Sequence record: PP496444.1
DNA length: 64,000 bases
Reading direction: 5' to 3' (one strand)
Made by a program: the position numbers and the translations under genes. Numbering within the stretch: position 1 is the first letter of the stretch; each line of letters begins with the position of its first letter. This document shows positions 20,266-58,717 of this stretch, piece by piece. The notes beneath the pieces are model-generated. The model had not been told where the DNA came from and searched no databases. It was given only the letters and a program-made list of their open reading frames with translations.

Positions 20266-21744
20266 ATGAAATCTGTAGCCATTGATTACCAAAAGATAGC
20301 CAAGGAGTGCCAGTGCACAGAGCTGCCGCCACGGGTAAGAGTAACCCGTGCACGGGTCTATCCAAACCTGAGGACGTGCCTACTCTATCTCAAGTACGAT
20401 GCCAAAGGTGAACTGGTGCAAGCCGAGATCACCGCGCCGTACGACACATCCACCGAGCCAAAGGTGCGTGTGCTCAAACACCCGGACAAGAAGTCGGAGT
20501 TCCTTTCATTATATAGGGCGCTGATCCGCCACCAGATTATACCGGAGTCGATACCGAAGAAAGGTAACGGCATTGCCCCGACGCTGGAGGTCATCGGTAC
20601 ACTGGTCAGTCTGCTGCCGGGGCGTGACGTTGAAACCTTCCGCACGCTGACCCCGGCCATCCAGACCGGTGGTGTCATATACGTGCCACTGGTTACCTCG
20701 CGTCCGATGCCGATGGTGCAACACTGGATACCTGTCAGCCAGCATTCAGAGCTGGGGATGATCGAACTCATTGACACCGACAGCAAGCCTCTACTGAACC
20801 AGTGGATCAACAGGTTGAGCAACACGGCCACCGGCTATGTGATCTACACGCCGGACGGTTCGCATGCACAGGAACTCCTCTGCTTCCGCGTACCCAACGT
20901 GCAAGGTGAGGAACTGTGCGTAGTCAAGAAGGTGGACTTCACGCTGACCGTGGCCCGCAGTCTCAAGCCAGTGCTGACCGTATCGACCAAGAGCACGCGT
21001 GCCGTGTCCCGCATCCCCCTGCCACATTACCTGATGCTGCGCAATCACCACATCAAGGTGGGTACCGTGATCTCGCTGCGCCGTAACGACCGGGGCGGGC
21101 TGGTGTACCATGAGACGGTAGCGGAGGAAGGCATGACACCCTTGCCTCTCTGCCCCTACTGTCACAGCGGATCTGTGCTGCTTCCCGGCAACAACGACGT
21201 GTACTGCAAGAACGACTCCTGCCGTGGCCTTGCCAACGTGCGCCTGCACTACGTCTTGAACAACAAGCTGGATGTCAAGTACCTGAGCAACACCAAGGTG
21301 ACAGCGCTGATCAACGACAAGCAGGACCTGTTCACCCTGCTCAAGACACCGACTCACCTACTGCGACACAGACCGGGCTTCGGTGCACGTACGGTCGATG
21401 CACTGGAGAAGAAGCTGGACAGCATTGCAAGTCTTCCGCTGCATACGCTGGCCGAACTGTCCTGCGCCTTCTACAACGTGGGCGTGCCCCCACTGGATGA
21501 GATGGTGTTCAAGAAGATCTTTTCCATCATGTCACTCGACTACCTGAAAGCGCTGCCGTCCACTGGCAAGATGTACAGTCAGTTGCTCGACATCGAAGGT
21601 ATCCGCAACAACCGCGCAGTGGCTTTCCTAGCGGGTTGGCCTGCCTTTCAACAGTGGATGCTAGACCTGGATGCTGCCCTACAATCTCGCAGCGCAGTCT
21701 CCACCACGGTAAATAGCCCAAAACAAATTCGAGGTGTGCAATGA
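20266..21744 (+). CDS. NAD+-dependent DNA ligase homologue, apparently catalytically inactive
   Basis: OB fold, CPYC..CKNDSC Zn finger and HhH repeats present. Motif I EPKxDG aligns to YPNLRT; no domain Ia; motif III EVIGT. Start ATG 20266 (GGAG). Confidence 0.65.
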   Translation: MKSVAIDYQKIAKECQCTELPPRVRVTRARVYPNLRTCLLYLKYDAKGELVQAEITAPYDTSTEPKVRVLKHPDKKSEFLSLYRALIRHQIIPESIPKKGNGIAPTLEVIGTLVSLLPGRDVETFRTLTPAIQTGGVIYVPLVTSRPMPMVQHWIPVSQHSELGMIELIDTDSKPLLNQWINRLSNTATGYVIYTPDGSHAQELLCFRVPNVQGEELCVVKKVDFTLTVARSLKPVLTVSTKSTRAVSRIPLPHYLMLRNHHIKVGTVISLRRNDRGGLVYHETVAEEGMTPLPLCPYCHSGSVLLPGNNDVYCKNDSCRGLANVRLHYVLNNKLDVKYLSNTKVTALINDKQDLFTLLKTPTHLLRHRPGFGARTVDALEKKLDSIASLPLHTLAELSCAFYNVGVPPLDEMVFKKIFSIMSLDYLKALPSTGKMYSQLLDIEGIRNNRAVAFLAGWPAFQQWMLDLDAALQSRSAVSTTVNSPKQIRGVQ

Positions 21745-22565
21745 GCAAGAACAAAGGAACACGTACCGCCGTGCTGGTCGGTGGAGGTTTGGACTCCCAC
21801 GCATACATGGTGTTGAACGCTGATCGAGCGCAGACAGACTTCATTCATGTGGACTACGGCCAGCGGGTTGCAGTGGCCGAGAGAAACGCCGTGCTGCACA
21901 TGGCCGAGAAGCTGGGCATTGCCCGCAGTCGTGTGTATACGTTGATCTGCGGCAAGACGAACCACATGCGCAAAGTCAACGAAGGCGTCGGCGTGTTGTT
22001 CGGCACTGGCCCGGTCGAGATGGACAACGCGTTCGTGAAAGGACGCAACCTGTTCCTGATTCAGAAGGCCATCGAACTGGGGCATGGTCACGTGCACTTG
22101 ACGTTGACGCAAGAACGTGGCCGGATGTTCCCCGATGCCGATCTGGGATTCGTCCAGCTGGTGGACAATCTGATGCACCGCAGCTACGACGTGAGAGTTA
22201 CTGCGCCCTACATCATGGAAGACAAGCATCGGGTGATGTTCAAGGCGTATCGCCACTGCCCCGAGTTCATCGACATGTCTTTCACGTGCTGGGTCGGCCC
22301 TCATGTAGAGTGCGGCATGTGCCCCCACTGCGTCAAGAAGGAAAAGATTAAAGCCGAGATGGTTATCCAGAAAGCTGAGTACGATCTCAACAAGGATACC
22401 CGAGAGGTGCAGTGGGAACAAGTCAAAGCAGGCTACGGCAGTGCATTGAAACCAAGCAGTGTTCAAATCTGTGAAGGAATAGCTGCACGTACGGATGAGG
22501 CATTAGTTTCATCTCCTATCCGTAGCCCTGATCAGGCCATGATCAAATCGATCCGAGGTAATTGA
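21741..22565 (+). CDS. queC: QueC-family (7-cyano-7-deazaguanine synthase-like) protein, paralogue 1
   Basis: GGGLDS PP-loop, DYGQR, KGRN, FPDA, Zn site C-x7-CGMCPHC. Confidence 0.82.
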   Translation: MSKNKGTRTAVLVGGGLDSHAYMVLNADRAQTDFIHVDYGQRVAVAERNAVLHMAEKLGIARSRVYTLICGKTNHMRKVNEGVGVLFGTGPVEMDNAFVKGRNLFLIQKAIELGHGHVHLTLTQERGRMFPDADLGFVQLVDNLMHRSYDVRVTAPYIMEDKHRVMFKAYRHCPEFIDMSFTCWVGPHVECGMCPHCVKKEKIKAEMVIQKAEYDLNKDTREVQWEQVKAGYGSALKPSSVQICEGIAARTDEALVSSPIRSPDQAMIKSIRGN

Positions 22566-22566
22566 C

Positions 22567-23334
22567 ATGAAAAAGTTCGCCAGCTGGTTCAAGCGTCTGC
22601 TGAGTAAGAAGCCCAAGTCGATCACGATGACGATGACAGACGCCGGTGGCAAGTTGATCACCATTCACATACCACAAGGTGCGGGTGTCGAATACACTCT
22701 GTCGAAGTCGGGTACCCACTTGAACGTCTCGGTCAAGGACGACATCTTCGTACTGAGCACGAACGGTGGTGGAGGTGGTGGGAGCGGCGGTGGTTCCAGG
22801 CCTGGTGTCAATGGTGGCCCCGGTCATACGCCCGTGTATCCGCGCCAAACCGCCCCAGTGGGTGCAGGCGCTCCGAACGCGGGTTGCGCTGGGGATGCAC
22901 CGAGTGGAGCAGGTGTAACGCCACCAGTGGGCGGACAAGCATCGTTTCCTATTGGCGCCCGAGTAACCGTATCAGGTGGTGGCCGGTGTAGTGGTCTGGC
23001 GGGTGACGGGCGTGAACGTAAAGAACTCGGGGGTGGCCCCGGTCCCGACGGAGACAGCTTCGTCGCATCCCCCATTCGCAGTAGTGACCGAGCCTACATG
23101 ATCCGAGGCTTGTACTACGTCATCACGACCCGCAAGATAACAGGCGAGGAATATCCGATCCACGAACTTCTGCACTGGGGCAAGAAGAGCATCGAACTCA
23201 TGGGCAAGTTCCACACAGTTCGAGATGCTATCGACGAACTCAAGAAGCAGCTGGGTATCGTGTTAGACGATATTACGGACTATCAGGTTGAATCCATCCC
23301 CAAACGCATGTGCAAGCCCCCGCGTAAACCTTGA
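22567..23334 (+). CDS. Hypothetical protein with Gly/Pro-rich linker
   Basis: 255 aa; poly-Gly tract; SPIRS.D.A..IRG motif shared with the QueC-1 tail. Confidence 0.6.
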   Translation: MKKFASWFKRLLSKKPKSITMTMTDAGGKLITIHIPQGAGVEYTLSKSGTHLNVSVKDDIFVLSTNGGGGGGSGGGSRPGVNGGPGHTPVYPRQTAPVGAGAPNAGCAGDAPSGAGVTPPVGGQASFPIGARVTVSGGGRCSGLAGDGRERKELGGGPGPDGDSFVASPIRSSDRAYMIRGLYYVITTRKITGEEYPIHELLHWGKKSIELMGKFHTVRDAIDELKKQLGIVLDDITDYQVESIPKRMCKPPRKP

Positions 23335-23372
23335 GCGGGTAAATGGCTCGTAACTAATCCGGAGACATCAGC

Positions 23373-24191
23373 ATGAACGCTACACCGCCAAAGATCCTTA
23401 TCGCATTCAGCGCTGGCACAGATTCAACGACAGCGGCCTACTACTACCGAGGTCTTGGGTATCAGGTAACGCTGGCTGTGTTTGACGATGGCCCCTGCAA
23501 CGACCCGCAGAGCCCATTGTACGATCCGAGCAAGCCGGAAGACCTGACCAACTTCTCGGATGAGTTCTACGACTACGTGCGACTGCATCAGGATCACACT
23601 GCCCGGCACTTGCAGTTCGACTTCGTTGAGATGCGCTATCCGCAGCTTCCGTTGCTGGAAGCCAACAAGACGGCCAAGCCCGGTCGGGACAACGCAGCGG
23701 CAGCAGAGGCTGATGGCTTGGGGTTCTGGGTCGGCTTCAAAGGCCTGATGGCAATGATGCTGATGAGCCACGGTGCGGCCAACGGCTACGAGGCTGTGGT
23801 CTTCGGACACATGCCGTACAACAGCCATTACGAAGATGAGCTGCCCCAGAACTTCGAGCTGCTGCGCCAGTACATGGTTACGGCCTACGGTAGCCGGGTA
23901 AACATCCCCCACATCTACCACCCGTTCTACCGCCCCAACTTCGATACCAAAGAAAAGGTTATCCAGCTGGCGTTGAACATCGGTGTGCCCCTGCGAGATA
24001 CTTATTCGTGCCGCCGAGGTGAAGTGGAAACCCGAGGCGTTCTCCTGCCACTTCTTCGTGGTGGTAAATCCAGCTATGTGAATCCCACCTACCGCTGGAA
24101 GCATTGTGGTACTTGTGAGAACTGTGTCGAACGCAAGCGAGCCTTCGCGGCGCTGGGCATGAAAGACCCTGCCCCTTATATGGAACATTGA
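23373..24191 (+). CDS. QueC-family protein, divergent paralogue 2
   Basis: FSAGTDS, KEKVIQLA..IGVP..TYSC, HCGTCENCVERKRAF; RN and YPDC motifs replaced by FK and YEDE. Confidence 0.78.
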   Translation: MNATPPKILIAFSAGTDSTTAAYYYRGLGYQVTLAVFDDGPCNDPQSPLYDPSKPEDLTNFSDEFYDYVRLHQDHTARHLQFDFVEMRYPQLPLLEANKTAKPGRDNAAAAEADGLGFWVGFKGLMAMMLMSHGAANGYEAVVFGHMPYNSHYEDELPQNFELLRQYMVTAYGSRVNIPHIYHPFYRPNFDTKEKVIQLALNIGVPLRDTYSCRRGEVETRGVLLPLLRGGKSSYVNPTYRWKHCGTCENCVERKRAFAALGMKDPAPYMEH

Positions 24192-24192
24192 T

Positions 24193-25212
24193 ATGGCCCT
24201 TTCAATCTGGCCGCTGACCGAGGAAGAACTCGGTCAGAACCTAGTCAACGAACTGAATCGTACCAGCAAGGCGCTGGTTAACCGGCGTATGTGGTCTTTG
24301 CCACTGCTCCGGCGTTTGTTTTATCGGCGCACTGAGATCGGTGTACCGGAACTGCTTCACGTCTGTTCCTCCAATTATCGGGGCCAGATTTACTTCTGCC
24401 TGCTTGTGAACTACCGAGACGTGGTGATGGGGAACCCTGAGCAATACGGCTGGGATCTCGCTGGCCGGTGGTTGTTCTACGACGTGGATCTGTTGGATAC
24501 CCCGGAGTTTAAGAAGGTTAAGCACGCCATCGGACAAGCTGCCCCTGTGATTACTGATGTGTCTTATGGTCAAGCATTCGTCCCAGATGAAGGTGGTATG
24601 GGGGACGAGCACTGGATCAAGAAACTGAAAGGTAACTACCGCCCTCACATTTTCGGCGAAAAGTCAAAACAGGTTATAGTCAGTCAGACCTGTGGTATGG
24701 CAGCTACTCATGTGCTGACTGAGGCGGTAATGTCATTCGGTATCCAGCGCGCCGAAAGATTCATCGCGGAAGGTCAAGCGGATGTCATGCCAGAGTTGTA
24801 CGACCTACCCATGCAGCTGGCCGGGCTAGGGTCTATACCTGGAACCCGGATCGGCACCGTTTCACTCACCTGCCGGGATACCCGTGCACTGATCGGAACC
24901 TTGTCGTTCTACGTTGTGGCAGGTTTGGGTCACAGCGACATCATGTACATGCACGAGATGCTGATCGATCCTGATCCGAAGTGGAAGCCTCTGTCGGTAG
25001 CGGTCAACTTGCACATCCAGGCAATCATGTACGTGCGACATCTCAACGACCGATCCAATCAGAGTGCTGACTTGGTGATCAACCTCGGATTCAACTTGGA
25101 CGAGAAGTATAACACCTACAAAGAGGTGTTCCGTCCGAACAAGTCAGAGATGGAAATCTACACCGGCATGCACACCGAGCCGGGTATTCCACTGTCCTGT
25201 TTCAAGGGGTAA
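24193..25212 (+). CDS. Fem/ATE-like GNAT-fold (amino)acyltransferase candidate 1
   Basis: DEHWIKKLKGNYR helix; C-terminal LSVA..L..AI....NLG....YKEVFRP resembling the ATE_C/Bpt terminus. Confidence 0.5.
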   Translation: MALSIWPLTEEELGQNLVNELNRTSKALVNRRMWSLPLLRRLFYRRTEIGVPELLHVCSSNYRGQIYFCLLVNYRDVVMGNPEQYGWDLAGRWLFYDVDLLDTPEFKKVKHAIGQAAPVITDVSYGQAFVPDEGGMGDEHWIKKLKGNYRPHIFGEKSKQVIVSQTCGMAATHVLTEAVMSFGIQRAERFIAEGQADVMPELYDLPMQLAGLGSIPGTRIGTVSLTCRDTRALIGTLSFYVVAGLGHSDIMYMHEMLIDPDPKWKPLSVAVNLHIQAIMYVRHLNDRSNQSADLVINLGFNLDEKYNTYKEVFRPNKSEMEIYTGMHTEPGIPLSCFKG

Positions 25213-25215
25213 GAC

Positions 25216-26226
25216 ATGTACACTCCGTATTCCCAAAATAGCCTTATGCAGTCCATCCCGCTGGACGACAAAGGCACGTTCGCACATCCGCCGTACACCA
25301 TGGAAGGGGAGTTCACCGACGTGTGGACAAACCCCAATCTGTATGGGTTCACCAGCCTGCTGGACGGGCAGAGAAATAGCCGGACGTACCGGTACTGGAT
25401 GACGTCTCACAACCTTCCCGCGTTGTTCATCGGCCCGCATCATGAAGACTCTTTCTGGTTTGAATTCAGCACGGGATTGGAACCCACCTGTATGCTGGAT
25501 TACAACGATATCAATATCCAAGGTGGTATGAAAGACTTCCTCGAACGGTTGACTGCATCTCGTCGGCGCGCACTACTCAAGGCAATGGAAACGGATACGG
25601 TCATCCACAAGGCAGGAACCGTAGCCAACTTCAATCTGTATTATCCGGTTGAAGGACGCCTGTACAGCCTGACATCCATTCACGAACGCCGGGTGCTAAA
25701 AGACATCTCCGAGTTTATCGAGTCTAAACTCTGGAGTATGAAGCAACAACCTACTGACCTCACGTACGGGGCTTTCACCACCTTGATGAATCATATCAGG
25801 TTGAAGCAACGTGAAGATACACCGCTGGGCCATAAGTTGCGCAACGTCCAGCTCTTGGTGATCCGAGATGAACGTTCCGGCTTTATCCTGTCGGTTCATC
25901 TGGTGGGGATACACACGCTGAAAGATGATAACATGAATCCCACCAAGACGTACTTGCACTCCTTTGCGCGCATCACTGTTCTTCATGCACGGATTGCGTT
26001 GCTCACGCTGATCAAGGCAGTTCAAGAGTTAAACGTCACCAGTCAGTACGCATCCCGTGCACAGGAAAAGATCGACTACATCGACGTAAGCAACGTGGTG
26101 CTGTCCGAGCGAGAGCAGTACAAGTCGGACTTCTTCACTGACCGGTCACAGGTACACGCATGGGCATCCCCGGCGTTGTTGGAACGGCAGTTACCTTTCA
26201 TCCATCCCCGTGACATAACTCTGTAA
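25216..26226 (+). CDS. Fem-like GNAT-fold transferase candidate 2
   Basis: MKDFLERLTASRRRALLK helix; C-terminal ..YIDV....QYK. Confidence 0.5.
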   Translation: MYTPYSQNSLMQSIPLDDKGTFAHPPYTMEGEFTDVWTNPNLYGFTSLLDGQRNSRTYRYWMTSHNLPALFIGPHHEDSFWFEFSTGLEPTCMLDYNDINIQGGMKDFLERLTASRRRALLKAMETDTVIHKAGTVANFNLYYPVEGRLYSLTSIHERRVLKDISEFIESKLWSMKQQPTDLTYGAFTTLMNHIRLKQREDTPLGHKLRNVQLLVIRDERSGFILSVHLVGIHTLKDDNMNPTKTYLHSFARITVLHARIALLTLIKAVQELNVTSQYASRAQEKIDYIDVSNVVLSEREQYKSDFFTDRSQVHAWASPALLERQLPFIHPRDITL

Positions 26227-26272
26227 ATGATGGGAACAGCCCCACCATCACTTTATCTATAGGGTAGTTCCC

Positions 26273-27322
26273 ATGCAAGACTATGACAAGACTTACATTA
26301 GCAGCTGTTTAGTTACCAATCTGGTGTACGCGGGTTTGAACAATCTTATCACGCCCCGTGCCATTGACCTGCTGATCGAACATCAGGCAGCTATGGAAAA
26401 CATCTATGCCAATTTGGAAACGGCCTATCAGATTCCACAACCTTACCCAAAGGAGTCATTCTACTTTCCGTCAGAGGGTACGCCGGTGTTGGTGTCCGAT
26501 TACCTGAATTCCAGTCCTGCTATTCGTTGCGGAGAACTGGCCGGGTTCGAGGCTAAGCCCAGTGCATTCTTCATGCCGACTGCTGGCATCTTCCCGGAAC
26601 ATCGCATCGACGTACGTGGCCTGTCTTTACGCGACTTCGATCATTATCTAGTCGAACGTGCGGAAGTATCGCGTATCACTACCAATCTGGTGGCCGACAA
26701 GTTCCGTTGCGAGACCCACGTGTACAAAGCGGATGAAGATCACGTCCTGATCCATGACGCCGAACGGCTGGGTATCAGTCAAGCGGACTTCCGCCGCATG
26801 TGGGTACAGACCCGCCGCCGGGAAATCGCTGACAACTATCTGCAGCACATGCCCATCGAAGACTCCGCCAAGGATGATCAGGTGGTGCGACTGGTCAACG
26901 AAGACGTAGCACGGGTGTTCGCCCAGAACGTTGATTATGACCGCATGGTTCCGCCTGAGATGATCTTCGACGGGCAGGGTAAGCCAGTGCTGACCGTGCT
27001 GAAAGATTGCAACGCCAAGGTGCTAGGGATCGGCGTATACGTCATCTACAAGTCCGCTGACCCTGAACAAGACAGCGAGCTGCACTGGCGCGGTGCTTTC
27101 TACGACCACGAAGATCCACGCACGGCATCCATGGGCATTGAACACGCTCTGGTCGCCAGCGCACTGCACACGGCGTACGCCTGCAATGCGGTCCTGTACT
27201 TGACCAAGGCACCGAAGTCCGTGTGTGACGCATGGAAGACGGAAGTGCACCAAGGTTACGGCCTGGTCCGTAATGCGATGCCGGAACTGTCTGACACCCC
27301 TTACATTCTGGCTATCCAGTAA
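26273..27322 (+). CDS. Fem-like GNAT-fold transferase candidate 3
   Basis: DFDHYL helix; SMGIEHAL..AL..A.....LYL.....WK terminus. Confidence 0.45.
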   Translation: MQDYDKTYISSCLVTNLVYAGLNNLITPRAIDLLIEHQAAMENIYANLETAYQIPQPYPKESFYFPSEGTPVLVSDYLNSSPAIRCGELAGFEAKPSAFFMPTAGIFPEHRIDVRGLSLRDFDHYLVERAEVSRITTNLVADKFRCETHVYKADEDHVLIHDAERLGISQADFRRMWVQTRRREIADNYLQHMPIEDSAKDDQVVRLVNEDVARVFAQNVDYDRMVPPEMIFDGQGKPVLTVLKDCNAKVLGIGVYVIYKSADPEQDSELHWRGAFYDHEDPRTASMGIEHALVASALHTAYACNAVLYLTKAPKSVCDAWKTEVHQGYGLVRNAMPELSDTPYILAIQ

Positions 27323-27355
27323 ATAGCCGGTAACTCCATCCATTGAGGTACTTCC

Positions 27356-29440
27356 ATGAAATCCGTGAACCCCATCTTCAAGCACGTTCCCCAGTTCGAC
27401 TGGCCTGTCATTCCGCGTGCACAGTGGGAAGAGATCATCAAGGGCAAAGAGCACGTGATGTTCGACTCTTTCTCGCAACTCGCCCAGGTGCTGGCTATCC
27501 CGGCGAGCAGTTACCAGTTCTACTTTGAAGATGGGTCCACGTTGTTCGCTGGTCCCGAAGCAACCTTCACCGCCGCCCCGTATCCGTTGTATCAGGATCT
27601 GGAATTCGTGCTGACCCCCGACGAGACGTTGGTACCCGGTCTTGCACTGGATACCAAACCGTGGGGCCTGTACACCGATGAATGGGTGGACAAGTACGAA
27701 GGTGAGGACAAGGGAGACCTTGATCACAAGACCGGGTTTGAGTTCATCCCGTTGCCAGACGCCTTGAAACTGGTAACCCTCAACCCGGAGACCATGCAGC
27801 TCCAGTACACCGCCATCGAGAGCTTCACGTACGACGGCGTGACCTACGTATACCTGCTGGCTGATGGCGTGTGCTGGGTACTGGCGGGCAAGTCCGGTGG
27901 TCTGGTTGCCAGCGAGCAGGACAAAGGCGCAGCGTACATCATGGTGTCTCATCCCGAGTTCGGCGGGTGCAGCGTAGACAACATGTACGCCAGCGAGTTC
28001 GGTGAAGAAGACGCGACGTTCTACGTCCAAGACGAGGAACACAACTACCTGGACGCGGCTAACCGTATCTTCGAGGAAGCCAAGGGGGTAGGTGCTGGTA
28101 CGTTCCTGACCATCGAGACCGGTGATGGACTGCCGACGGCACTGGCCTACAACCTGCGGCACAGTGATGTGTCCCATGTTAACCTGCCGATGCACAACAT
28201 CCACCAGTTCACCGTGTTGCACGAGAAGCTGGGTGAGACTCCTAACTTCTCCGATGCGCCGGAAGCGTGCCGCATGAAAGAGGTGATGGAGTATCTGGCG
28301 GACCCTGAGTCCCCGGTAGACCATTACTGGTCGGCCATCATGGTGCTGGAGAAGAACTTCCCCGGCTTCGCGGAAGCGTTGAAAGACTCCAGCGTCCCGA
28401 CCCGCGACATCGTGCACTCCAAACAGGCATTCAGCTTGGAGATCGATCGTCAGTTCGGCAAGGAAGTGGCGAGCAAGATCGGTCTGAACACTGGCGTCTT
28501 CGCCCAAGTAAAAGACCGCGATGAGTGGCTGGCGATCAAAGACAAGTTCCCTACGCCTTTTGTGGCCGTCAAGTACAACACCAAACACTTCATCGGTATC
28601 TTCGACAAGGAAGAGGTGGCGAAGTCCATCAATATGTGGCTGGCCGGTCAACCCGGAGAGTCGCTGATGATCGAAGAGTACTTCGGTGAAGGCAATCAGG
28701 AATTCAACCTGTGCTACGTGATCAACGAAGAGTTCGTGCAGCCGATGCTGTTCCTGTGCGAAGTCAACAAGATCCTCGGCAATGACACCGGTGGCAAAGG
28801 CGGCAACACACTGGCCTGCCATGATGCCCGCATCGAGAAGTACCCGGAGGCCTTCGAGCCGGTCAACGCTGCGCTGGCTCATCTGCATGAACACGTGGAA
28901 GGTGTGAAGGGCTGGGTTGATCTGAGCTTCATGGTCCGAGACGGCGTCCCGTACTTCACAGAGTGGTGCATCCGCATCGGCTGCTCCAACAACGCCACCA
29001 TCGTGCGCCAGATGGAAACGCCGCTTAACATCCTGCTGACTAACCTGACCAACAAAGAATACACCGACGTGAGCTGGAAGCATTCGATGTCTGTTAGCGT
29101 GGACATCTACAGCATGCCGCTGTCCGCAGGCAACGATGCCAACATGCAGTTCACAGACTCGCTGACCAACCCGGTGCAGATGGTGTCGCCACTCAATCTG
29201 GAACTGGCCGCTGAGAGTTTCTTCGACCCGATTGACTCGGCCTGGAACGCGGTGTTCGATGGTTACATCGTCGAGGCTTACAACCGCTACGGCACCGTCT
29301 CGGGCTACTCCACCAACTGGCAGTTCGCCTGCAGCGCGGCTTATAACCACTTGAAAGATCAGTCGGTGTTGTACGGAGCGTACCGTGATGCGCCTGTTCA
29401 CCACGACCCACTGACTCTGTTCCCTTTCCTCAAGGCGTAA
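27356..29440 (+). CDS. PurD/GARS-like ATP-grasp amide ligase with an N-terminal extra domain
   Basis: SLEIDRQFGK, VAVK, MIEEY, NDTGGKGGNT, FTEWCIRIG parallel the PurD LE.SK.FAK, VIEE, GPNTGGMG and EFN.RFG motifs. Confidence 0.72.
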   Translation: MKSVNPIFKHVPQFDWPVIPRAQWEEIIKGKEHVMFDSFSQLAQVLAIPASSYQFYFEDGSTLFAGPEATFTAAPYPLYQDLEFVLTPDETLVPGLALDTKPWGLYTDEWVDKYEGEDKGDLDHKTGFEFIPLPDALKLVTLNPETMQLQYTAIESFTYDGVTYVYLLADGVCWVLAGKSGGLVASEQDKGAAYIMVSHPEFGGCSVDNMYASEFGEEDATFYVQDEEHNYLDAANRIFEEAKGVGAGTFLTIETGDGLPTALAYNLRHSDVSHVNLPMHNIHQFTVLHEKLGETPNFSDAPEACRMKEVMEYLADPESPVDHYWSAIMVLEKNFPGFAEALKDSSVPTRDIVHSKQAFSLEIDRQFGKEVASKIGLNTGVFAQVKDRDEWLAIKDKFPTPFVAVKYNTKHFIGIFDKEEVAKSINMWLAGQPGESLMIEEYFGEGNQEFNLCYVINEEFVQPMLFLCEVNKILGNDTGGKGGNTLACHDARIEKYPEAFEPVNAALAHLHEHVEGVKGWVDLSFMVRDGVPYFTEWCIRIGCSNNATIVRQMETPLNILLTNLTNKEYTDVSWKHSMSVSVDIYSMPLSAGNDANMQFTDSLTNPVQMVSPLNLELAAESFFDPIDSAWNAVFDGYIVEAYNRYGTVSGYSTNWQFACSAAYNHLKDQSVLYGAYRDAPVHHDPLTLFPFLKA

Positions 29441-29443
29441 TCC

Positions 29444-30607
29444 ATGAGCACTCCATTCCAACAGTTCACCCTAGATGAGTGGATTCGCTACATGCGAGGC
29501 GAATCCACTATCTGGCGTATGTACGCCGACGATCATCCCGACAGGGTTGAGTTCAGCCCGGTATGGCGTGACGAGATGTACCGGTTGATGGTGCAGTTCA
29601 AAGAACTGCTGCCGATGTCGTTCTCCAATCCGGTGTACGGCTTCACCGAAGGCTTTTTTGAAGGGTTTGGACTCCAGCCCTTCTACGGCGATGATCCGTT
29701 CAATCCGATGGTTCAACCTCTAAGCCACCCTTTGGTGCACGTGGGCTTCCCGCTCACGCTGGACGAGATGGCATCAAGCATGAAGGACTGGCAGTCCCTG
29801 AGCGATCACCTGGGGCGTCCGCAGCTGGTCGATACATTCGAGCCGGTTCCGTTGCTATCGCGCAACCTGTACGAGCCTAACGCGTTGCTGACCGTACGGA
29901 ACAAGGAAGAGATCGTGATGAACGGAGGCTGGTCCAGTAGATACTTCCTCTGGCTGAACAGTCCGATCACCGAACTCAAAGGTAACTTCGACATTTATCT
30001 GGCCAGCCTGACCAAGAAGCGCCGCTACAAAGTGAAACAGGCACTGGCGACGGTCGGCACTGAAGAAAACCCGGCTATCAGTGTCAGTACCGGCAAAGGT
30101 TTCGGTTACAGTGAGCTGGCAGATCAAGTAGACAGCATCCTCGCGACATTTGAAGATCCAGTGGACATCGAGTGCATGCTTCTTCAGCTGCTGTTCGGCG
30201 TAGCAACCTGTCACACGCACCCTCATCTGGTCGATATCGTTTATGCAGATGAGCAGTTGGGGATCTTCATCAAGCGCAACGGCCACACGATGAACTTCCT
30301 CTACAACCGCGACCCGGACAACCGCGCTGATTCAGGCATCAACCTGCTGACCCAGTACGTGCGCCACTTGCACGAGAACGGCCCGGCAGACATTGCCTAC
30401 GTGGACCCGACATGTCGATATCGGCCTGACGAGGACAGTATGAACACCTACAAGCGGGTGATCACCAACGAGAACCGGTATCACCCAATGCCATTCGTCT
30501 CGGCTGACCCTGCGCATATCGAAGGTGTGCTAACCCCGGCGTTCATTGCGGGTATCTGGCAGCTGGATGCGACCAACGGCCCGGCCAATCCTGAGATGAT
30601 GGAGTAA
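29444..30607 (+). CDS. Fem-like GNAT-fold transferase candidate 4
   Basis: FDIYLASLTKKRRYKVKQ; DSGINLL....YVD....NTYKR. Confidence 0.6.
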   Translation: MSTPFQQFTLDEWIRYMRGESTIWRMYADDHPDRVEFSPVWRDEMYRLMVQFKELLPMSFSNPVYGFTEGFFEGFGLQPFYGDDPFNPMVQPLSHPLVHVGFPLTLDEMASSMKDWQSLSDHLGRPQLVDTFEPVPLLSRNLYEPNALLTVRNKEEIVMNGGWSSRYFLWLNSPITELKGNFDIYLASLTKKRRYKVKQALATVGTEENPAISVSTGKGFGYSELADQVDSILATFEDPVDIECMLLQLLFGVATCHTHPHLVDIVYADEQLGIFIKRNGHTMNFLYNRDPDNRADSGINLLTQYVRHLHENGPADIAYVDPTCRYRPDEDSMNTYKRVITNENRYHPMPFVSADPAHIEGVLTPAFIAGIWQLDATNGPANPEMME

Positions 30608-30609
30608 CC

Positions 30610-31557
30610 ATGGCAAAGCACAAAGTCAAGAGGTTGGAAATCAGCCACATCTACGACTTCTACCCGTTGTATCAGGTGATGTACGGGCGTGGCATGGAGA
30701 CCAAAGCATTCGAGGTCTCCAAGTTCGCCAAGATGGTGCTGGACTTTGAAGCCTCAACCAGTACCCGCCGGAAGTGGGACGTGCTGGAGCCTTTTAGCGG
30801 TATCAGCGAGCACGAACACTTCTTCGCTGCGACCGGCCTGAACATCGAGCACTACACCGGCATGGACATCGTGGTTCCAGAGGGGGCCACGAACGTCATT
30901 CAAGGGGACATCATCACCACACCTCTGCCGTCGCATGTCAACGCGGTGTTCGCCTTCTACTACAGTTTGCAGAATGTACGGGACGCCAAGACTGATATGC
31001 ACACGCGGGCCAAGCTGGTTGAGTTCTTTGATAACGTTCTCGGTCACCTGCAAGTCAACGCGAACAAGAGTCGTATGCCCGCAGTGTTCGCGTTCCACCT
31101 TGACCAGCCTGAAGAACCTAATTACTATCTGACGTCCCGTGCCGACGTTGGAGGTGAGCAATCATGGATCGCACCCGCGTGTGGTCTGCTGGGTCAACAT
31201 CTAGGGTGCAAGCCGACAGACACGCTGGAAGTGAAATGCAATCTGGACACTTGGTACAACCGCATTCAGTGCACGGCGTACGATCAGGCAGAGGACATCC
31301 AGATTCTGGTAAATGGGCGAGTAACCGCTACCGTTGACATCAAGAAGCCGTTCACCCATCGGGTCTGGACGGAGCATGAGGTCATCGATATCCTGCGGGG
31401 TCTGGACTACAAGCTGGATATCCGCATGTACAACGGCACCCTCTCCAATTACGACTTCGTGATGACCCGTCTGGATGACAAGCCCGTTCCCGGCGATGAA
31501 GAGGCTAATACTAATCAGATGACAACTGATATGCTGGTTGTCGTTAATCCGAGGTAA
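30610..31557 (+). CDS. Class I SAM-dependent methyltransferase-like protein 1
   Basis: VLEPFSG, YTGMDI, IQGDI...VNAVFAFYYSL. Confidence 0.65.
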   Translation: MAKHKVKRLEISHIYDFYPLYQVMYGRGMETKAFEVSKFAKMVLDFEASTSTRRKWDVLEPFSGISEHEHFFAATGLNIEHYTGMDIVVPEGATNVIQGDIITTPLPSHVNAVFAFYYSLQNVRDAKTDMHTRAKLVEFFDNVLGHLQVNANKSRMPAVFAFHLDQPEEPNYYLTSRADVGGEQSWIAPACGLLGQHLGCKPTDTLEVKCNLDTWYNRIQCTAYDQAEDIQILVNGRVTATVDIKKPFTHRVWTEHEVIDILRGLDYKLDIRMYNGTLSNYDFVMTRLDDKPVPGDEEANTNQMTTDMLVVVNPR

Positions 31558-31559
31558 GC

Positions 31560-32477
31560 ATGGCTAAGCCCAAAGTTCCAACCAGAACGGTCCCCACGTT
31601 GTACCAAGACTGGGGATTGTACAGCGCCATCTGCGAGCTGCCCGAGGTTACGATGCTGATGATGTCGCGCTTCGTGGCAGATCGGACCATCGAGCATGCT
31701 GAGCGCAACGATCTGGAAAGCGTGTCGATCATGGAGCCTTTCAGCGGCCCGATCCCGTACTACGAGCCAGACATCCGCAGCTTCCTGACTCGCGCTCGCG
31801 TTGATCTGGATACGTACGATCACGTCGAGTACCTGGACCATGGTGAGCTGTCGGAAGATAACAGTATCATCATCGGTGACATCACCACCATCGACCTGAA
31901 ACAGAAGTACGATGTCATCTACGGCAGTTACGGCAGCTTGGCCTGCTTGCTGCTGGATCAGACGCACAACAAAGCGTACGAGAAGTCGCATGCAGCGCTG
32001 GTCAACATCCGCGAGCACCTGAAACCCAACGGCATTTTCATCCTGAACGCCAACGGGTCCAGCGAAAGACTGTTGAACGATCTGCTGAACTCCGATGAGC
32101 CGGATCAGGAGATTCGTGTCCGTCCGGGGTCACAGCTGGGCAAGGCGTTCCGGCTCAAGCCAGACAGTAACGCGCTGCTTCGCTTCACCTATCAGGTGGA
32201 CTACGACCGGTGCACCACCTGCACCATGTGCTACTACAGCGATATGGTGCTGTCTGTAAATGGGGTTGACATCCAGCGCTGGGAGGTGGAATCCCCGACG
32301 TATCTTGCGCCGCTGGATGAACCCGAACTAATCCGAATGGCAGGCATGGCGGGTTTCAATCTGGGCAGGACTGAGTTCTACGGATTGGACACCACCGGGT
32401 ATCCTGCCTTCTTCAAGATGGATACGGTCTGCGACGGGGCATGGTCCCCCGCCGAATTCGTAGTCTTTCGCACCTAA
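31560..32477 (+). CDS. Class I SAM-dependent methyltransferase 2
   Basis: IMEPFSG, IGDITTIDLKQKYDVIY.SYGSL, HLKPNGIFIL (pattern of small-molecule N-methyltransferases). Confidence 0.72.
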   Translation: MAKPKVPTRTVPTLYQDWGLYSAICELPEVTMLMMSRFVADRTIEHAERNDLESVSIMEPFSGPIPYYEPDIRSFLTRARVDLDTYDHVEYLDHGELSEDNSIIIGDITTIDLKQKYDVIYGSYGSLACLLLDQTHNKAYEKSHAALVNIREHLKPNGIFILNANGSSERLLNDLLNSDEPDQEIRVRPGSQLGKAFRLKPDSNALLRFTYQVDYDRCTTCTMCYYSDMVLSVNGVDIQRWEVESPTYLAPLDEPELIRMAGMAGFNLGRTEFYGLDTTGYPAFFKMDTVCDGAWSPAEFVVFRT

Positions 32478-32487
32478 CGAGGTTCCT

Positions 32488-33723
32488 ATGAGCGTTATCA
32501 TCCCCACCGTAGCGGCAGACAGTGGTCAGCACGACATGATCATTCAAGGTTGTTCCACTGGTCGCGTCTCTATGGCTGAGCCTAACGAGGGCTCCAAACC
32601 CAAGTCGTCCAAGAAGCTGTACGAACGCGAAGACCTTATGGCGTACGACAGCGAGTCGGAACACTGGCAGAAGCAGTTGGCCCGCCGCTACGCCCACCAC
32701 GGTGAGATGGCTGGCGTGCTGAACAACGTCGAGGTGGTGCCGGAAGCCACCTACCAGAACTTCGACATGAAGATCACCCCGTACACCGCGCAGTTGATGG
32801 ACCAGAACGATCCCAACTGCCCGATCCGTCTGCAGTACATGCCGACCAACAAAGAGCTAGAGTCGATTCAGCGCGAAGAGACCATGCACAACGAACTGGG
32901 CGAGGAAGAAGACACCATCCCCGGTACCTCGGTAGTGCATCGCTATCCGCGTCGTGTCTTGTTCCTGACCACTACCCAGTGCGCCAGCTTTTGCCGTTAC
33001 TGCACCCGTGCACGTATCGTCTCCCATGGCGGCGAAGCAGCGATCACCAAGAAGCACCTGGATGCCAGCATCGACTACATCGCGGGCAACAAGGACATCG
33101 AAGACGTGCTGCTGTCCGGCGGTGACCCGTTCATCCTCCCAGACAACAAGCTTGACGAGATCCTCGGTCGTATCCGCGCCGAAGCACCTCACGTTCGCTT
33201 CCTGCGTATCGGTAGCCGACTGCCGGTCCAGATGCCAACCCGTATCACTCCAGAGCTGTGCGAGATTCTGGAACGCCACAACGTCAACATGGTCAACATC
33301 CATGTGAACCATCCGAAAGAGGTAACTCCTCTGCTGGCGTCCCGGTTGAAGATGCTGCGCAAAGCGGGCATCATGCTGGGCAATCAGGCCGTCATGCTGA
33401 AAGGTGTGAACGACTCCATCGAGGTGATGACCGAGCTGTGCTTGCGCATGGTCGAGATGGGCGTGCGTCCGTACTACGTCTACTCCAACGATCCGGTGGC
33501 ACAGGCTGCACACTTCACCGTGTCGCTGAAAGAGATGTTGGACATCAACGAAGGCATGCGTGGCTTCCTGTCTGGCCCGGCGATGCCCCTGTTTATCTGT
33601 GACGGAATCGGCGGCCTTGGAAAACTTCCTGTCCAGAACGACTACGTCAAGGTTAACGACTCCGGTGAAATCTGGGGCCGTAACTACGAGGGTTTGACTA
33701 CCCGAATGAAGCATCTGGAATAA
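32488..33723 (+). CDS. kamA: Lysine 2,3-aminomutase (radical SAM, PLP)
   Basis: HRYP.RVLF, CASFCRYCTR, LSGGDP, HVNHP, GNQAV.LKGVND, RPYY, GGLGKLP (PLP Lys). Confidence 0.92.
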   Translation: MSVIIPTVAADSGQHDMIIQGCSTGRVSMAEPNEGSKPKSSKKLYEREDLMAYDSESEHWQKQLARRYAHHGEMAGVLNNVEVVPEATYQNFDMKITPYTAQLMDQNDPNCPIRLQYMPTNKELESIQREETMHNELGEEEDTIPGTSVVHRYPRRVLFLTTTQCASFCRYCTRARIVSHGGEAAITKKHLDASIDYIAGNKDIEDVLLSGGDPFILPDNKLDEILGRIRAEAPHVRFLRIGSRLPVQMPTRITPELCEILERHNVNMVNIHVNHPKEVTPLLASRLKMLRKAGIMLGNQAVMLKGVNDSIEVMTELCLRMVEMGVRPYYVYSNDPVAQAAHFTVSLKEMLDINEGMRGFLSGPAMPLFICDGIGGLGKLPVQNDYVKVNDSGEIWGRNYEGLTTRMKHLE

Positions 33724-55789: not shown

Positions 55790-56761
55790 ATGAAAGATAT
55801 GCGCTATACCGAACTGTTCTATTCCCTCCAAGGTGAGGGGTTGCGCGTTGGGGTGCCGTCGGTATTCTTCCGCATGTTCGGTTGCAACTTCGAGTGCAAG
55901 GGATTCTCCAATCCTGAAATGAAAGATCCCAACGTGATCCCGGCCATCAACCTGCTGGCGGTCAACGAAGCGGATCTGGAGCTGGGCTGTGACTCTCGCT
56001 ACAGCTGGCACAAGGACTATCGCAACCTGGCCATCAAAGCCCCGCCTCACGAGGTAGCCAACACCCTGCTCGACTTCACGAAAGAGAAGTTCATGGCAGC
56101 GGTAGCCCGCTGGCCCAAGCGTAATCACGCAGGCAATGTCGTCCGCTTGATTCCCGGTCAGACTACGAGTGAAATACTCCAGATTGCCACGATGGCTCAT
56201 GTGCCGGACTGGGTCTTCACCGGCGGCGAACCGTTCATGCAGCAAGAGCAACTTGAAGCCCTGCTGCGCCACGCCATGTACGTGGTGGAGGAAGAACAGG
56301 TTGACTTCGGCGGCAATGGACTACCTATGCTGACCTTCGAGACCAACGCCAGCATCAAGATGCGTGACTCTATGGTCAGCTGCCTGAGTGAGTACAACGA
56401 CGGCTTTGGTGACTTGCACTTCTCCAACAGCCCCAAGCTGTCGTTCACCGGAGAGCATCGTAGTGCGGCGCTCAAGCCCGAGGTGATCGGTCAGCAAGAA
56501 CAAACCGGTGGCTCCAGTTCTTTCAAGTTCGTGGTGCGTCCGGCGCGTGAAGACTTCGATGAGCTGATGGAGTTCATGCAAGAGTACATGGCGTACACGG
56601 GCTCGGGGAATCTCGAAGGCATCTACGTCATGCCGGTCGGCGCCAGCCTACACCAACAGCAGGCCATCGCCACTCAGGTTGCGGAACTGGCATTGGAGTA
56701 CGGCGTCAACTACAGCCCTCGGCTCCAGTGTGACCTGTGGGCCAACAAGATAGGGACGTGA
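55790..56761 (+). CDS. queE: 7-carboxy-7-deazaguanine synthase (radical SAM)
   Basis: ELFYSLQGEG..VG.PSVF.R.FGCNFEC...CDS.YSW, FTGGEP, ETN, SNSPKL, SPRLQ..LW. Confidence 0.93.
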   Translation: MKDMRYTELFYSLQGEGLRVGVPSVFFRMFGCNFECKGFSNPEMKDPNVIPAINLLAVNEADLELGCDSRYSWHKDYRNLAIKAPPHEVANTLLDFTKEKFMAAVARWPKRNHAGNVVRLIPGQTTSEILQIATMAHVPDWVFTGGEPFMQQEQLEALLRHAMYVVEEEQVDFGGNGLPMLTFETNASIKMRDSMVSCLSEYNDGFGDLHFSNSPKLSFTGEHRSAALKPEVIGQQEQTGGSSSFKFVVRPAREDFDELMEFMQEYMAYTGSGNLEGIYVMPVGASLHQQQAIATQVAELALEYGVNYSPRLQCDLWANKIGT

Positions 56762-56763
56762 TC

Positions 56764-57108
56764 ATGGATTCCTTTCAAGAGTGGTTCATCTACGACATCA
56801 TGTTTTGGGTGACGATAGGCTTTATGCTGCTAGTTGTCTTGATCATCATGCTGGTGACGATTGTGATGATCAAGGTGGACCAGCACATGGTAAATAAAGG
56901 TTACTGGAGTGTACCCAAAAGCCGAGGTGACTCGGCCTTTCTGTGGTTCCACATAACCATGGCGGCAACCTTTTTCCTGCTTGTCATCACGTCTATCCTC
57001 GACTCCAAGCCCTTACTCATTATTGGAACCTTGGTGTACTGCGCTATCTCGATATACGCGCTGATCCTGAGATTCCCCACGACTACCAACAAGGACACCC
57101 CGCAATGA
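56764..57108 (+). CDS. Membrane protein (three hydrophobic segments)
   Basis: Hydrophobic stretches; atypical codons; start ATG 56764. Confidence 0.55.
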   Translation: MDSFQEWFIYDIMFWVTIGFMLLVVLIIMLVTIVMIKVDQHMVNKGYWSVPKSRGDSAFLWFHITMAATFFLLVITSILDSKPLLIIGTLVYCAISIYALILRFPTTTNKDTPQ

Positions 57109-58328
57109 CGATCAAAGACCGCAAGCGTAGAGAGAAGCGCAATTCCCGTGACAGCCGACTGGTCAAGTCTGCCAAGTCCCGTACGTCAACCTGGAAGCTG
57201 CACATCAACCCCGGCACACTGGTCAAGAGCATGCAGAACGCCCTGACCATGACCAAGAGCGAGCACGTGCTGCTGACCGTCGAGACGTCGCCGGAGGGTA
57301 ACGCCCAGATCGTGATCGTCGCCACGGGTAACGACACCCAATTCAAGCAGGTGGTGGTCGGCACTATCGATCAGCTCGGTCCAGAGCCGGGGCTTGGTTT
57401 GGACGTTAACGTCTTGACCGGCATTGCGCGTGGCCGGAAAGAGATGTGCCTGTTCACCGAACCAGACGACACCCGCATCCACTTCTCGTCGAAGGGTGCC
57501 AATGGCCGGGCGTACTCCGGAGACGTGTGCTCCGTTCCTGACATCGCCTTCGCCGTGGACAGCATTGCCCCAAGCAAAGACGACGTGGTGCTTGATCAGA
57601 GCATCCGCACCGCGTTGCAGTCTGCCGTCAACCGCGTGGGCTTGACCGACGTAGTGGAAGGCAAGGAGCTGGATCTGTGGGTGCAAGCCAACATGAAGGG
57701 CTTGACCGTGGCGTGTTTCGATACCCTGCACGTTGCCACACTGCACTTCCCAGAACTAAAGGTGAAGCGCGACTTCAATCTGAACTTGCCGCTGTCCACG
57801 TTCACCACGATCCAAGGTCTGACAGAGAGCGGTGAGTTCACCATCGGCATCGCAGACAACACCATTACGGCATACAGCGACGAGTTCTTCGTGAGCATGC
57901 CGCTGCTGCAAGAGACGGCGCGTACCCAATCGCTGGCGGACGTACTGGGATTGCTCCAGACCATCACCAGCAATGGCAATCCCGAGGCAAGCTTCACGTG
58001 TTCGGTGGAAGATCTGAACACCGCGCTCGGTTCGACCAATGCAGTCTTTGAAACCGGTGCCAAGACTCGCTTGACCATCGAAAAGAAGACCGGTGTAACG
58101 ATCAACATCAAGACCAGCTACGGTCAAGTAAATGACCAAGTGGCGAACGACAACTTCACAGGCAGCGGCGAGTTCGTAATCTCGCAACCGTTGCTGGAAG
58201 ATATCCTGCGGGTGTACAGCGACGACAAGATCACCATAAAGTTGTACAACAAGCCGACCTCGCTGCTGTCGGCCTCGGGTAAGGTAAAGGACTACGCCTA
58301 TACCTACATCGCCCTGTTGATGGATTGA
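57105..58328 (+). CDS. dnaN: DNA sliding clamp (DnaN beta-clamp-like)
   Basis: 407 aa from ATG 57105; repeated alpha/beta pattern (VATG, LTVACFD, I...LLEDIL); located in the replication block. Confidence 0.65.
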   Translation: MTIKDRKRREKRNSRDSRLVKSAKSRTSTWKLHINPGTLVKSMQNALTMTKSEHVLLTVETSPEGNAQIVIVATGNDTQFKQVVVGTIDQLGPEPGLGLDVNVLTGIARGRKEMCLFTEPDDTRIHFSSKGANGRAYSGDVCSVPDIAFAVDSIAPSKDDVVLDQSIRTALQSAVNRVGLTDVVEGKELDLWVQANMKGLTVACFDTLHVATLHFPELKVKRDFNLNLPLSTFTTIQGLTESGEFTIGIADNTITAYSDEFFVSMPLLQETARTQSLADVLGLLQTITSNGNPEASFTCSVEDLNTALGSTNAVFETGAKTRLTIEKKTGVTINIKTSYGQVNDQVANDNFTGSGEFVISQPLLEDILRVYSDDKITIKLYNKPTSLLSASGKVKDYAYTYIALLMD

Positions 58329-58717
58329 TGAAACCCTCGGATATCAAGCACATACCGTTGCACACGTTCGTCAAGGTGGGAGTGGCCGAATACCTGTTCC
58401 TGAACCGCAGCGCAGTAGCAGGTATCAAGCTGACCACTACCAAGATGGCGTTGGATGAGATTCCGAGTATCCATGTCCATGAGATAACCATGGGCAAGGA
58501 CGGTATCCATGTAGGGTATCTGTTCAAGACGCCCAAGAGGGTTTCACATGCCGCGAAGTCCCTGATCTTTGCGCCGTCTATTTCCATAGATGCGGCCAAG
58601 CGTTGTCAGGCTTCGTTCCAAGAATTCTTCGTCGGACTGGATTGCTGGGTGACCTCGGAAGGGGCCACGTTGTTCAACGCCCAGAAGTACGACGCTTCAT
58701 TACTCAGACCATTATAA
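58328..58717 (+). CDS. Hypothetical protein
   Basis: TGATG overlap with the clamp gene. Confidence 0.6.
   Translation: MKPSDIKHIPLHTFVKVGVAEYLFLNRSAVAGIKLTTTKMALDEIPSIHVHEITMGKDGIHVGYLFKTPKRVSHAAKSLIFAPSISIDAAKRCQASFQEFFVGLDCWVTSEGATLFNAQKYDASLLRPL

Follow-up and report, generated by a model that had tools for sequence, protein, structure and literature searches.

The last 64 kb of the genome of the Pseudomonas putida jumbo phage vB_PpuM-Peetri (PP496444.1, 200,264 bp; the 64-kb stretch is hereafter the window) carry a twelve-gene operon that most likely encodes a 7-deazaguanine-based hypermodification of the phage DNA with an undescribed, amino-acid-bearing tailoring module. Four of its open reading frames (ORFs), here called A–D, had been read in a preliminary description of the sequence as divergent GNAT-fold paralogues of the Fem/ATE type, clustered around an ATP-grasp gene. 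That description overlooked the decisive context, which is the stronger result: a 7-deazaguanine pathway (QueC, FolE, QueE and a gene like tRNA-guanine transglycosylase, TGT) accompanied by a KamA-like aminomutase. We regard as established the folds predicted for D and A, the domains identified in the neighboring genes, the conserved gene neighborhood and the fusion of a QueC-like to an A-like domain in a related contig. That A, B, D and possibly C act as divergent Fem-like tailoring enzymes for a hypermodified 7-deazaguanine of the phage DNA is a reading whose chances we judge to be evenly balanced.

Positions below are window positions (PP496444.1 position minus 136,264) unless the accession is given. 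The region is common to eight P. putida sister phages at 84–86% nucleotide identity; Peetri and eight relatives were cultured on P. putida KT2440, and the paper describing the phage collection presents Peetri as a jumbo phage in a new genus cluster. The four ORFs exist as claimed, on the plus strand and 336–387 amino acids (aa) long. When compared with two sister phages, all operon genes are under purifying selection, and the ratio of nonsynonymous to synonymous substitution rates (dN/dS) of A–D is 0.08–0.28 (A, 0.10–0.28; B, 0.08–0.13). Because these values are on par with those of flanking enzymes, we take A–D to be real, functional genes. The 812-aa open frame on the minus strand at 27023–29461 was rejected as a gene, being the antisense shadow of the whole ATP-grasp gene; further long antisense ORFs in the same 55% G+C region were also taken as shadows of the coding strand.

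Fold and kinship of ORFs A–D

ORF D (29444–30607, plus strand, 387 aa) can be placed firmly, by family search, an AlphaFold2 (AF2) model and fold searches, as a predicted tandem-GNAT protein of the Fem/MprF/CelD type. An exhaustive profile search from seven D relatives yielded a family of 92 cluster representatives. PF13480 (Acetyltransf_6) is matched by 6 of the 84 aligned relatives (best E 3.8e-8) and PF04339 (FemAB_like) by 2, and D itself matches neither; most clusters that a language model places near D belong to PF13480 or FemAB. Foldseek against the PDB returned 2hqy (E 3e-4), the aminoacyl-tRNA-dependent peptide synthase Sbb17 (3e-3), FemX (1e-2) and MprF/aaPGS domains. With VIA-align, the ten best matches are all aminoacyl-tRNA-dependent tandem-GNAT transferases (MprF/aaPGS, FemX, Sbb17 and 2hqy; Z 8.1–11.1), compared with Z 7.8 for human ATE1 and at most 8.1 for single GNATs. 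Residues 12–348 of the D model cover both domains of FemX, MprF/aaPGS and Sbb17 (Z 10.0–11.1). Similarity to ESM Atlas models of FemAB_like and PF13480 proteins reaches TM 0.54–0.56 over 286–302 residues, and the nearest AFDB clusters are CelD and BioF2-like. Few positions of the D family are nearly invariant; they include the arginine of the mid-protein helix and the lysine of a C-terminal aromatic-Lys element (K337 is kept in at least 90% of 84 sequences).

Model and profile comparisons also support the same Fem/CelD-like tandem-GNAT fold for ORF A (24193–25212, plus strand, 339 aa). We used ESM Atlas's own model (pTM 0.63), which aligns with a FemAB-family cluster at TM 0.63/0.62 over 279 residues (1–328) and also matches further PF13480 clusters and tandem GNATs; overall, matches to FemAB/PF13480 clusters have TM 0.58–0.63 over 250–280 residues. 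Feature neighbors of A include Mig-14, LPG_synthase_C and PF13480. The A family was widened with P0009 (57% identity), the A-like domain of contig L017, a fragment from L011 and a 310-aa ORF from L013. Aligned by hhalign to the 84-sequence D family, the A-like family gave E 8e-4 over 155 collinear columns (A136–314 to D180–341), spanning the basic helix through the Tyr-Lys element; E was 3e-3 after L013 had been added. All five diverged A-like proteins retain the Tyr-Lys pair. The GNAT fold first suggested for D and A from short motifs is supported by the family comparisons and models.

ORF B (25216–26226, plus strand, 336 aa) is a probable Fem/CelD-like double-GNAT protein, judged from sequence comparison alone. 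Its hhalign match to the 84-sequence D family has E 1.1e-3, with the signal coming from one helix (B99–127/D176–204). At a relaxed threshold the alignment is collinear over 274 columns and pairs both C-terminal elements. We also built a hidden Markov model (HMM) of the D family without A, B or C and scored it against the 88 six-frame window ORFs of at least 150 aa. B ranked second (E 0.0013–0.015), the best non-self match, and A third (E 0.13–0.6), with no other ORF standing out. The probability that two of three pre-named candidates would fill the first two of 87 places is about 8e-4.

ORF C (26273–27322, plus strand, 349 aa) fell outside the top 12 of the same ranking. Neither BLASTP nor HMMER nor hhalign relates it significantly to A, B, D or a family, its homologues were found in the nine sister phages only, and a D-domain HMM enlarged with A and B still did not recruit it. 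The best family score is E 0.26 (PF06852), and the AF2 model, built from seven near-identical sequences, is unusable (pLDDT 32.5). A weak language-model lead points to ordinary single GNATs, the neighbors including viral Acetyltransf_1 GNATs at low numbers of shared features. The C terminus is possibly GNAT-like: by eye, the C-terminal 110 or so residues may form a strand-strand-strand-helix-strand order compatible with a GNAT core.

All eight motifs on which the four-paralogue proposal was built are present in A–D. The mid-protein motif starts at residue 138 in A, 106 in B, 120 in C and 182 in D, and the C-terminal aromatic-Lys element at 307, 300, 319 and 334, respectively. The aromatic-Lys dipeptide alone is meaningless; each protein contains one to four of them. 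Direct comparisons within the set gave little: the best pairwise BLASTP E-value is 0.11 (A/D), hhalign with thin four-sequence profiles of A–D was uninformative, and no cross-family matches emerged when HMMs built for A, B, C, V51 and V54 were run on 96 collected proteins. PDB sequence searches with the D profile, B and C found no matches. Homologue searches with A, B and C reached the nine sister phages and two metagenomic fragments only; scanning IMG/VR with A, D and an alignment of the ATP-grasp protein returned no relatives, and a JGI metagenome scan returned a single 3.6-kb contig.

The proposal of four GNAT-fold paralogues therefore becomes three probable members and C as a possible fourth: D and A are supported, B is probable and C is without statistical support. 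A substantial minority chance attaches to the alternative that C, and conceivably B, is unrelated to the others and that the shared short motifs arose by chance. The failure of every similarity search with C and the commonness of the dipeptide speak for it, as does the fact that B is supported mainly by one 29-residue helix. On the other side, B comes first after D among the 88 ORFs and aligns with D collinearly to the C-terminal element, GNATs do occur among the language-model neighbors of C, and extra divergent Fem/ATE-like ORFs accompany D-like genes elsewhere (a 281-aa ORF in L015 and A-like sequences in L011, L013 and L017).

As the preliminary description expected, GenBank labels A–D hypothetical (the ATP-grasp gene likewise), and none reaches a Pfam, PHROG or NCBIfam model. 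Their C-terminal halves give nothing usable in Pfam at E up to 10. A–D score below the Pfam gathering thresholds of PF13480 and PF04339; by this curated test they are, as sequences, sister clades of the two families and not members.

The operon, its partners and their recurrence

The operon (20266–33723) consists of twelve consecutive genes on one strand and is kept in the eight sister phages. Its order is LigA-like, QueC no. 1, a Gly-rich protein, QueC no. 2, A, B, C, ATP-grasp, D, two methyltransferase-like genes and KamA. Successive genes between the stop codon of QueC no. 2 and KamA are 1–46 nucleotides (nt) apart; that stop codon lies 1 nt ahead of the start of A (24191/24193). In both Pseudomonas and Vibrio phages the operon sits amid replication genes, with a helicase upstream and topoisomerase II downstream.

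The two QueC-like PP-loop ATPases are encoded at 21741–22565 (plus strand, 274 aa; Pfam QueC 4.1e-18, PHROG 1550 8.5e-17) and 23373–24191 (plus strand, 272 aa; Pfam QueC 9e-12). The first scores 6.1e-17 with TIGR00364, under the equivalog cut-off. Between them, the Gly-rich 255-aa protein (22567–23334, plus strand) has no Pfam or PHROG match and keeps its position in the sister phages. An ATP-grasp gene amid the four ORFs had been predicted, and a PurD-type domain was found between C and D: the gene at 27356–29440 (plus strand, 694 aa) encodes a PurD-like ATP-grasp amide ligase with an extra N-terminal region of about 350 aa, its ATP-grasp domain being residues 355–586 (Pfam GARS_A E 2e-4, TIGR00877 purD 7.6e-9, PDB 2xcl 1.5e-5). 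The last gene (32488–33723, plus strand, 411 aa) encodes a KamA-family radical-SAM (S-adenosylmethionine) amino-acid 2,3-aminomutase. It matches lysine 2,3-aminomutase 2a5h at 7.5e-78 and TIGR00238 KamA at 1.3e-79, above the cut-off; against models of lysine, glutamate and arginine aminomutases it stays under all equivalog cut-offs, so that the subtypes are indistinguishable.

The first gene, Peetri_00182 (20266–21744, plus strand, 492 aa), encodes a putative LigA-like DNA-binding protein whose C-terminal half resembles the OB/Zn-finger/HhH part of an NAD-dependent ligase (residues 234–351 match DNA ligase 8ak4 at E 0.022). It has no adenylation domain, and its N-terminal 230 or so residues have no assignment. 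Homologues in Vibrio phages (E about 1e-17) match DNA_ligase_OB (6.5e-8), HHH_5 (5e-4) and the ligase Zn finger; they are annotated ligA despite the absent adenylation domain. Two genes follow D. Peetri_00191 (30610–31557, plus strand, 315 aa), a distant paralogue of the gene after it, has no Pfam or PDB match and is possibly a Rossmann/SAM-binding protein; it belongs to the conserved module, its homologues adjoining D-like genes in L011, L015, L017 and L019 (E 1e-14 to 1e-48). The next (31560–32477, plus strand, 305 aa) resembles a class I SAM methyltransferase on weak matches (Methyltransf_31 E 0.034, daptide methyltransferase NF041820 E 0.008, PDB 9sot E 0.013). Both proteins contain an E-P-F-S-G motif near residue 60, which we take to recall the SAM-binding motif of Dam-type methyltransferases.

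Further 7-deazaguanine genes lie outside the operon. A QueE-like radical-SAM enzyme of the 7-carboxy-7-deazaguanine synthase type is encoded at 55790–56761 (plus strand; PHROG 2076 2.9e-43, Fer4_12 5.6e-8) and GTP cyclohydrolase I (FolE), the first step of 7-deazaguanine synthesis, at 58727–59467 (plus strand; PF01227 2.2e-39). The precursor genes FolE, QueE and QueC are thus all present in the window. The 407-aa protein between QueE and FolE (57105–58328) was considered as DpdA and rejected: it matches PHROG 947, a DNA polymerase processivity factor (E 6e-7), and nothing in the PDB. The annotation of PP496444.1 lists no transglycosylase. Peetri_00102, outside the window at PP496444.1 82042–83412 (minus strand) and annotated hypothetical, matches PF01702 TGT at E 5e-8 (32.8 bits, cut-off 26.3) and has a homologue (5e-75) inside the deazaguanine cluster of L009 (L009 6457–8094). 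From these matches it is likely an unannotated DpdA-type transglycosylase.

Vibrio phages and large metagenomic phage contigs again have the pair of D-like and ATP-grasp genes, accompanied by QueC wherever enough flanking sequence is available. The Vibrio coralliilyticus phages GR11A (L004) and GR7B (L005) carry LigA-like, DUF5591, two QueC genes, a 351-aa ORF, D-like, ATP-grasp and KamA, followed by topoisomerase II as in Peetri. Their DUF5591 (ArcS-type) gene (E 3.3e-7; L004 7966–8928, L005 7969–8976) lies between the LigA-like gene and the QueC pair. It has no clear Peetri counterpart; Peetri_00100 scores E 0.005, and the Gly-rich protein occupies its place. In L015 (167 kb) the order is two QueC genes, the 281-aa ORF (ATE_C, a weak E 0.007), D-like, PurD-like ATP-grasp and a homologue of Peetri_00191; in L016 (182 kb) Gat-QueC precedes D-like and PurD-like ATP-grasp; and in L009 (238 kb) Gat-QueC, FolE and the TGT-like homologue are followed by a GNAT, PurD-like and D-like. 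L019 has Peetri_00191-like, D-like and KamA-like genes, and L011 has A-like, ATP-grasp, D-like and homologues of both methyltransferase-like genes. In the Logan contig SRR13837215_66984 (L017), one uninterrupted ORF (2–1480) joins a QueC-like domain (residues 41–194, E 2e-15) to an A-like domain (311–465, E 6e-8), with ATP-grasp, Peetri_00191-like and D-like genes downstream; the Peetri counterparts of the fused domains are QueC no. 2 and A, which a single nucleotide separates. ATP-grasp homologues adjoin D-like genes in L004, L005, L009, L011, L015, L016 and L017.

A bacterial D-like gene (assembly GCA_016124835.1) occurs with a small GNAT and a RimK/R2K-type ATP-grasp gene, flanked by ornithine/arginine decarboxylase, deoxyhypusine-synthase-like and arginase-family genes, and the cluster (L020 4682–11030) looks like one for polyamine modification. 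Because this D-like gene lies amid polyamine genes, the wider D family may act on di- or polyamines, which suggests amines as acceptors.

Elsewhere in Peetri, ARAGORN reports a tRNA-Gly(GCC) at PP496444.1 8353–8433, inside the coding sequence Peetri_00006; locus tag 00007 is absent from the feature list. A 365-aa thymidylate-synthase homologue, a deoxynucleoside monophosphate phosphatase and a 362-aa nucleoside triphosphate pyrophosphohydrolase are annotated outside the window (PP496444.1 26618–27715, 41905–42468 and 47016–48104). Such a set is often found in phages whose pyrimidine replacement takes place at the nucleotide level, so a second DNA modification in Peetri is possible.

A proposed tailoring pathway and its alternatives

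From the domain identities and the gene neighborhood we infer a pathway, including each chemical step, the step order, aminoacyl-tRNA as donor and DNA as the molecule that finally bears the base. 7-Carboxy-7-deazaguanine would be made by FolE and QueE together with a QueD that is either the host's or unrecognized. Because QueC-like enzymes are fused or adjacent to the Fem-like proteins, the carboxyl group of this compound is the probable handle: the two QueC-like PP-loop enzymes would adenylate it and either couple it to an amine or proceed to the nitrile. A beta-amino acid, for instance beta-lysine, would come from the KamA-like aminomutase; such residues are not carried by any tRNA. Their natural ligase would be the PurD-like ATP-grasp enzyme, acting through an acyl-phosphate, given that PurD itself links the carboxyl of an amino acid to an amine. 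Each Fem-like protein would then move one ordinary amino acid from aminoacyl-tRNA to a free amino group of the growing side chain, and the methyltransferase-like pair would cap amino groups. The sequential aminoacyl transfers suggested in the preliminary description would fit this context. The TGT/DpdA-like enzyme would swap guanine in DNA for the modified base, and the LigA-like OB/Zn/HhH protein would keep the machinery on DNA; these two proteins are why we tie the product to DNA. Tailoring may precede or follow insertion into DNA.

The product could be a short, cationic, peptide-like chain on 7-deazaguanine, made of the beta-amino acid and up to three or four tRNA-delivered amino acids with an N-methylated end, and the Fem-like transferases, PurD-like ligase and QueC-like amide ligases would be its assembly line. 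We offer this structure and its assembly line tentatively, as a possibility with the odds against it.

Several observations weigh against the pathway. Neither QueD nor QueF was recognized in the window, and the small ORFs at 56764–57108, 58328–58717 and 59477–60058 carry no recognizable signature of either. About 77 kb separate the TGT-like gene from the operon. The window has no tRNA gene and the rest of Peetri one doubtful tRNA-Gly. Some ATP-grasp/D-like pairs have no KamA alongside, and the beta-amino-acid step would therefore not be universal. For the fold itself, A–D have no Pfam match even at E up to 1 and no PHROG or NCBIfam match, and few D relatives reach PF13480. The AF2 model of D is of moderate quality (pLDDT 57, pTM 0.65), Foldseek E-values for it range from 3e-4 to 0.1 with TM-scores of 0.3–0.56, and C has no sequence signal that would place it among the Fem-like proteins. 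The phage collection paper is silent on DNA modification in Peetri.

The choice of donor is the next point. By analogy with the structural neighbors, aminoacyl-tRNA may be the donor for A, B and D. For D this rests on its fold neighbors, because we know of no proof of the donor for most PF13480/CelD/BioF2-like proteins. The same pathway and fold could therefore operate with acyl-CoA or acyl-carrier donors, or with catalytically dead Fem-like proteins that hold the substrate while the QueC-like and ATP-grasp ligases make all amide bonds; we consider this rather unlikely. An adaptor role would suit the arrangement in which every D-like gene examined adjoins an ATP-grasp ligase and one A-like domain is fused to a QueC-like one, and acetyl-CoA-dependent tandem GNATs (2wpx and Eis) are also among the structural matches of D (Z about 7–8). 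However, the ten best matches, all aminoacyl-tRNA-dependent, stand above the acyl-CoA GNATs. The loop that binds the acyl-CoA pyrophosphate should follow strand 4 and precede helix 3 in the catalytic domain. A search by pattern only (Q/R-x-x-G-x-G/A) does not find it there in any of A–D: B, C and D lack it, and the two occurrences in A (residues 165 and 208) are both outside the expected region. The near-invariant arginine and lysine of the D family and the aromatic-Lys pair of the five A-like proteins argue for active enzymes.

A product that is not on DNA is improbable. It might be a free peptidyl-deazapurine or beta-lysine metabolite, or a modification of tRNA or protein, the last conceivably a deazaguanylation-like conjugation used as counter-defence. 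Natural products of the peptidyl-nucleoside and streptothricin types are typically made with KamA, Fem-like and ATP-grasp enzymes together, D has Sbb17 among its top structural matches, and the TGT-like gene is distant from the operon. QueC-like and TGT-like enzymes are also known to conjugate deazaguanine to a protein N-terminus (bioRxiv 10.1101/2025.04.06.647259). Against these points, the first protein of the operon is built from the DNA-binding part of LigA, the operon lies among replication genes in phages of two host genera, and the phage 7-deazaguanine pathways characterized so far all end in DNA (PMC10516641).

Amino-acid tailoring of a DNA base would extend what is known. Known 7-deazaguanine DNA modifications carry small groups (nitrile, amide, amidine, aminomethyl, methyl or formyl), and the single glycine transfer of Mu Mom is the only tRNA-dependent DNA modification shown. 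The module occurs in jumbo phages of Pseudomonas and Vibrio that are in culture and also in metagenomic contigs, and it points to an unexplored class of deazaguanines that bear amino acids or peptides. Its core is the set of QueC-like proteins, Fem-like tandem GNATs and PurD-like ATP-grasp enzyme, with KamA-like and methyltransferase-like genes variable. If the peptide-like chain and its assembly line are right, peptides would be synthesized on DNA in a tRNA-dependent, non-ribosomal way, and the result would be the largest known 7-deazaguanine modification. The module would also offer new enzymes for site-specific DNA derivatization and a new escape route from restriction, CRISPR and glycosylase defences, and would assign functions to some 90 'hypothetical' protein clusters that form one clade.

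Comparison with known systems

The closest structural parallels are FemX/FemABX, MprF (aaPGS) and Sbb17, whose two-domain GNAT fold the D model shares (7z6a, 7f47, 5vrv, 4v36 and 9wqw at Z 10–11). The likeness extends to a basic helix that opens domain 2 and to the aromatic-Lys element near the C terminus, which may be the counterpart of Phe304–Lys305 in FemX, and a primary amine would be the expected acceptor. In contrast to these proteins, A–D have no detectable membership in PF02388 or PF09924. They are encoded by a phage in a 7-deazaguanine context rather than in cell-wall or lipid synthesis, and one Peetri operon would hold up to four paralogues. PF13480 and PF04339 are the nearest families by sequence, and in structure they supply the closest AFDB and ESM Atlas clusters to D (the latter also to A).

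For the proposed chemistry, the only precedent that has been shown is Mom of phage Mu, a phage GNAT that moves glycine from Gly-tRNA to a DNA base (PMC13219725). Mom is a single-domain GNAT dimer that acts alone on adenine N6, whereas Peetri would combine tandem GNATs with ligases and a deazaguanine pathway. No Mom structure appears in the 50 Foldseek or VIA matches listed for D, from a structure library whose coverage of Mom is unconfirmed.

Peetri shares FolE, QueE, QueC-like proteins and a TGT-family gene with the phage 7-deazaguanine systems (DpdA with FolE, QueD, QueE and QueC). Known tailoring in those phages is by Gat-QueC, ArcS, QueF and DpdL/M/N, and the Vibrio relatives of Peetri also carry the ArcS-type DUF5591 gene. 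The eight known phage derivatives have a side chain of at most methyl or formyl (PMC10516641). Tailoring of deazaguanine by Fem-like, ATP-grasp or aminomutase enzymes was not described in the literature searched for these combinations.

Coupling of a carboxylated base to an amine does have parallels. A QueC-like enzyme links 7-carboxy-deazaguanine through an amide to the amine of a protein (bioRxiv 10.1101/2025.04.06.647259), and an ATP-dependent ligase puts glycine on a carboxylated base, carboxymethylcytosine, in phage DNA (PMC12783734). In such amide ligases, Cap9 (QueC-like, of type IV CBASS, a defence system) and CmoY, the base carboxyl is adenylated and then attacked by an amine, the role proposed for one of the QueC-like enzymes of Peetri. 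Cap9 conjugates protein in defence and CmoY is an asparagine-synthetase homologue acting on 5-carboxymethylcytosine; neither comes with Fem-like partners. The pairing of aminomutase and ligase is found in the beta-lysylation of elongation factor P (EF-P) by EpmB/EpmA and in streptothricin-type pathways, where a KamA-family enzyme makes a beta-amino acid that an ATP-dependent ligase then joins to an amine. The ligase in those pathways is a lysyl-tRNA synthetase paralogue or a nonribosomal peptide synthetase, whereas in Peetri it would be the PurD-like enzyme.

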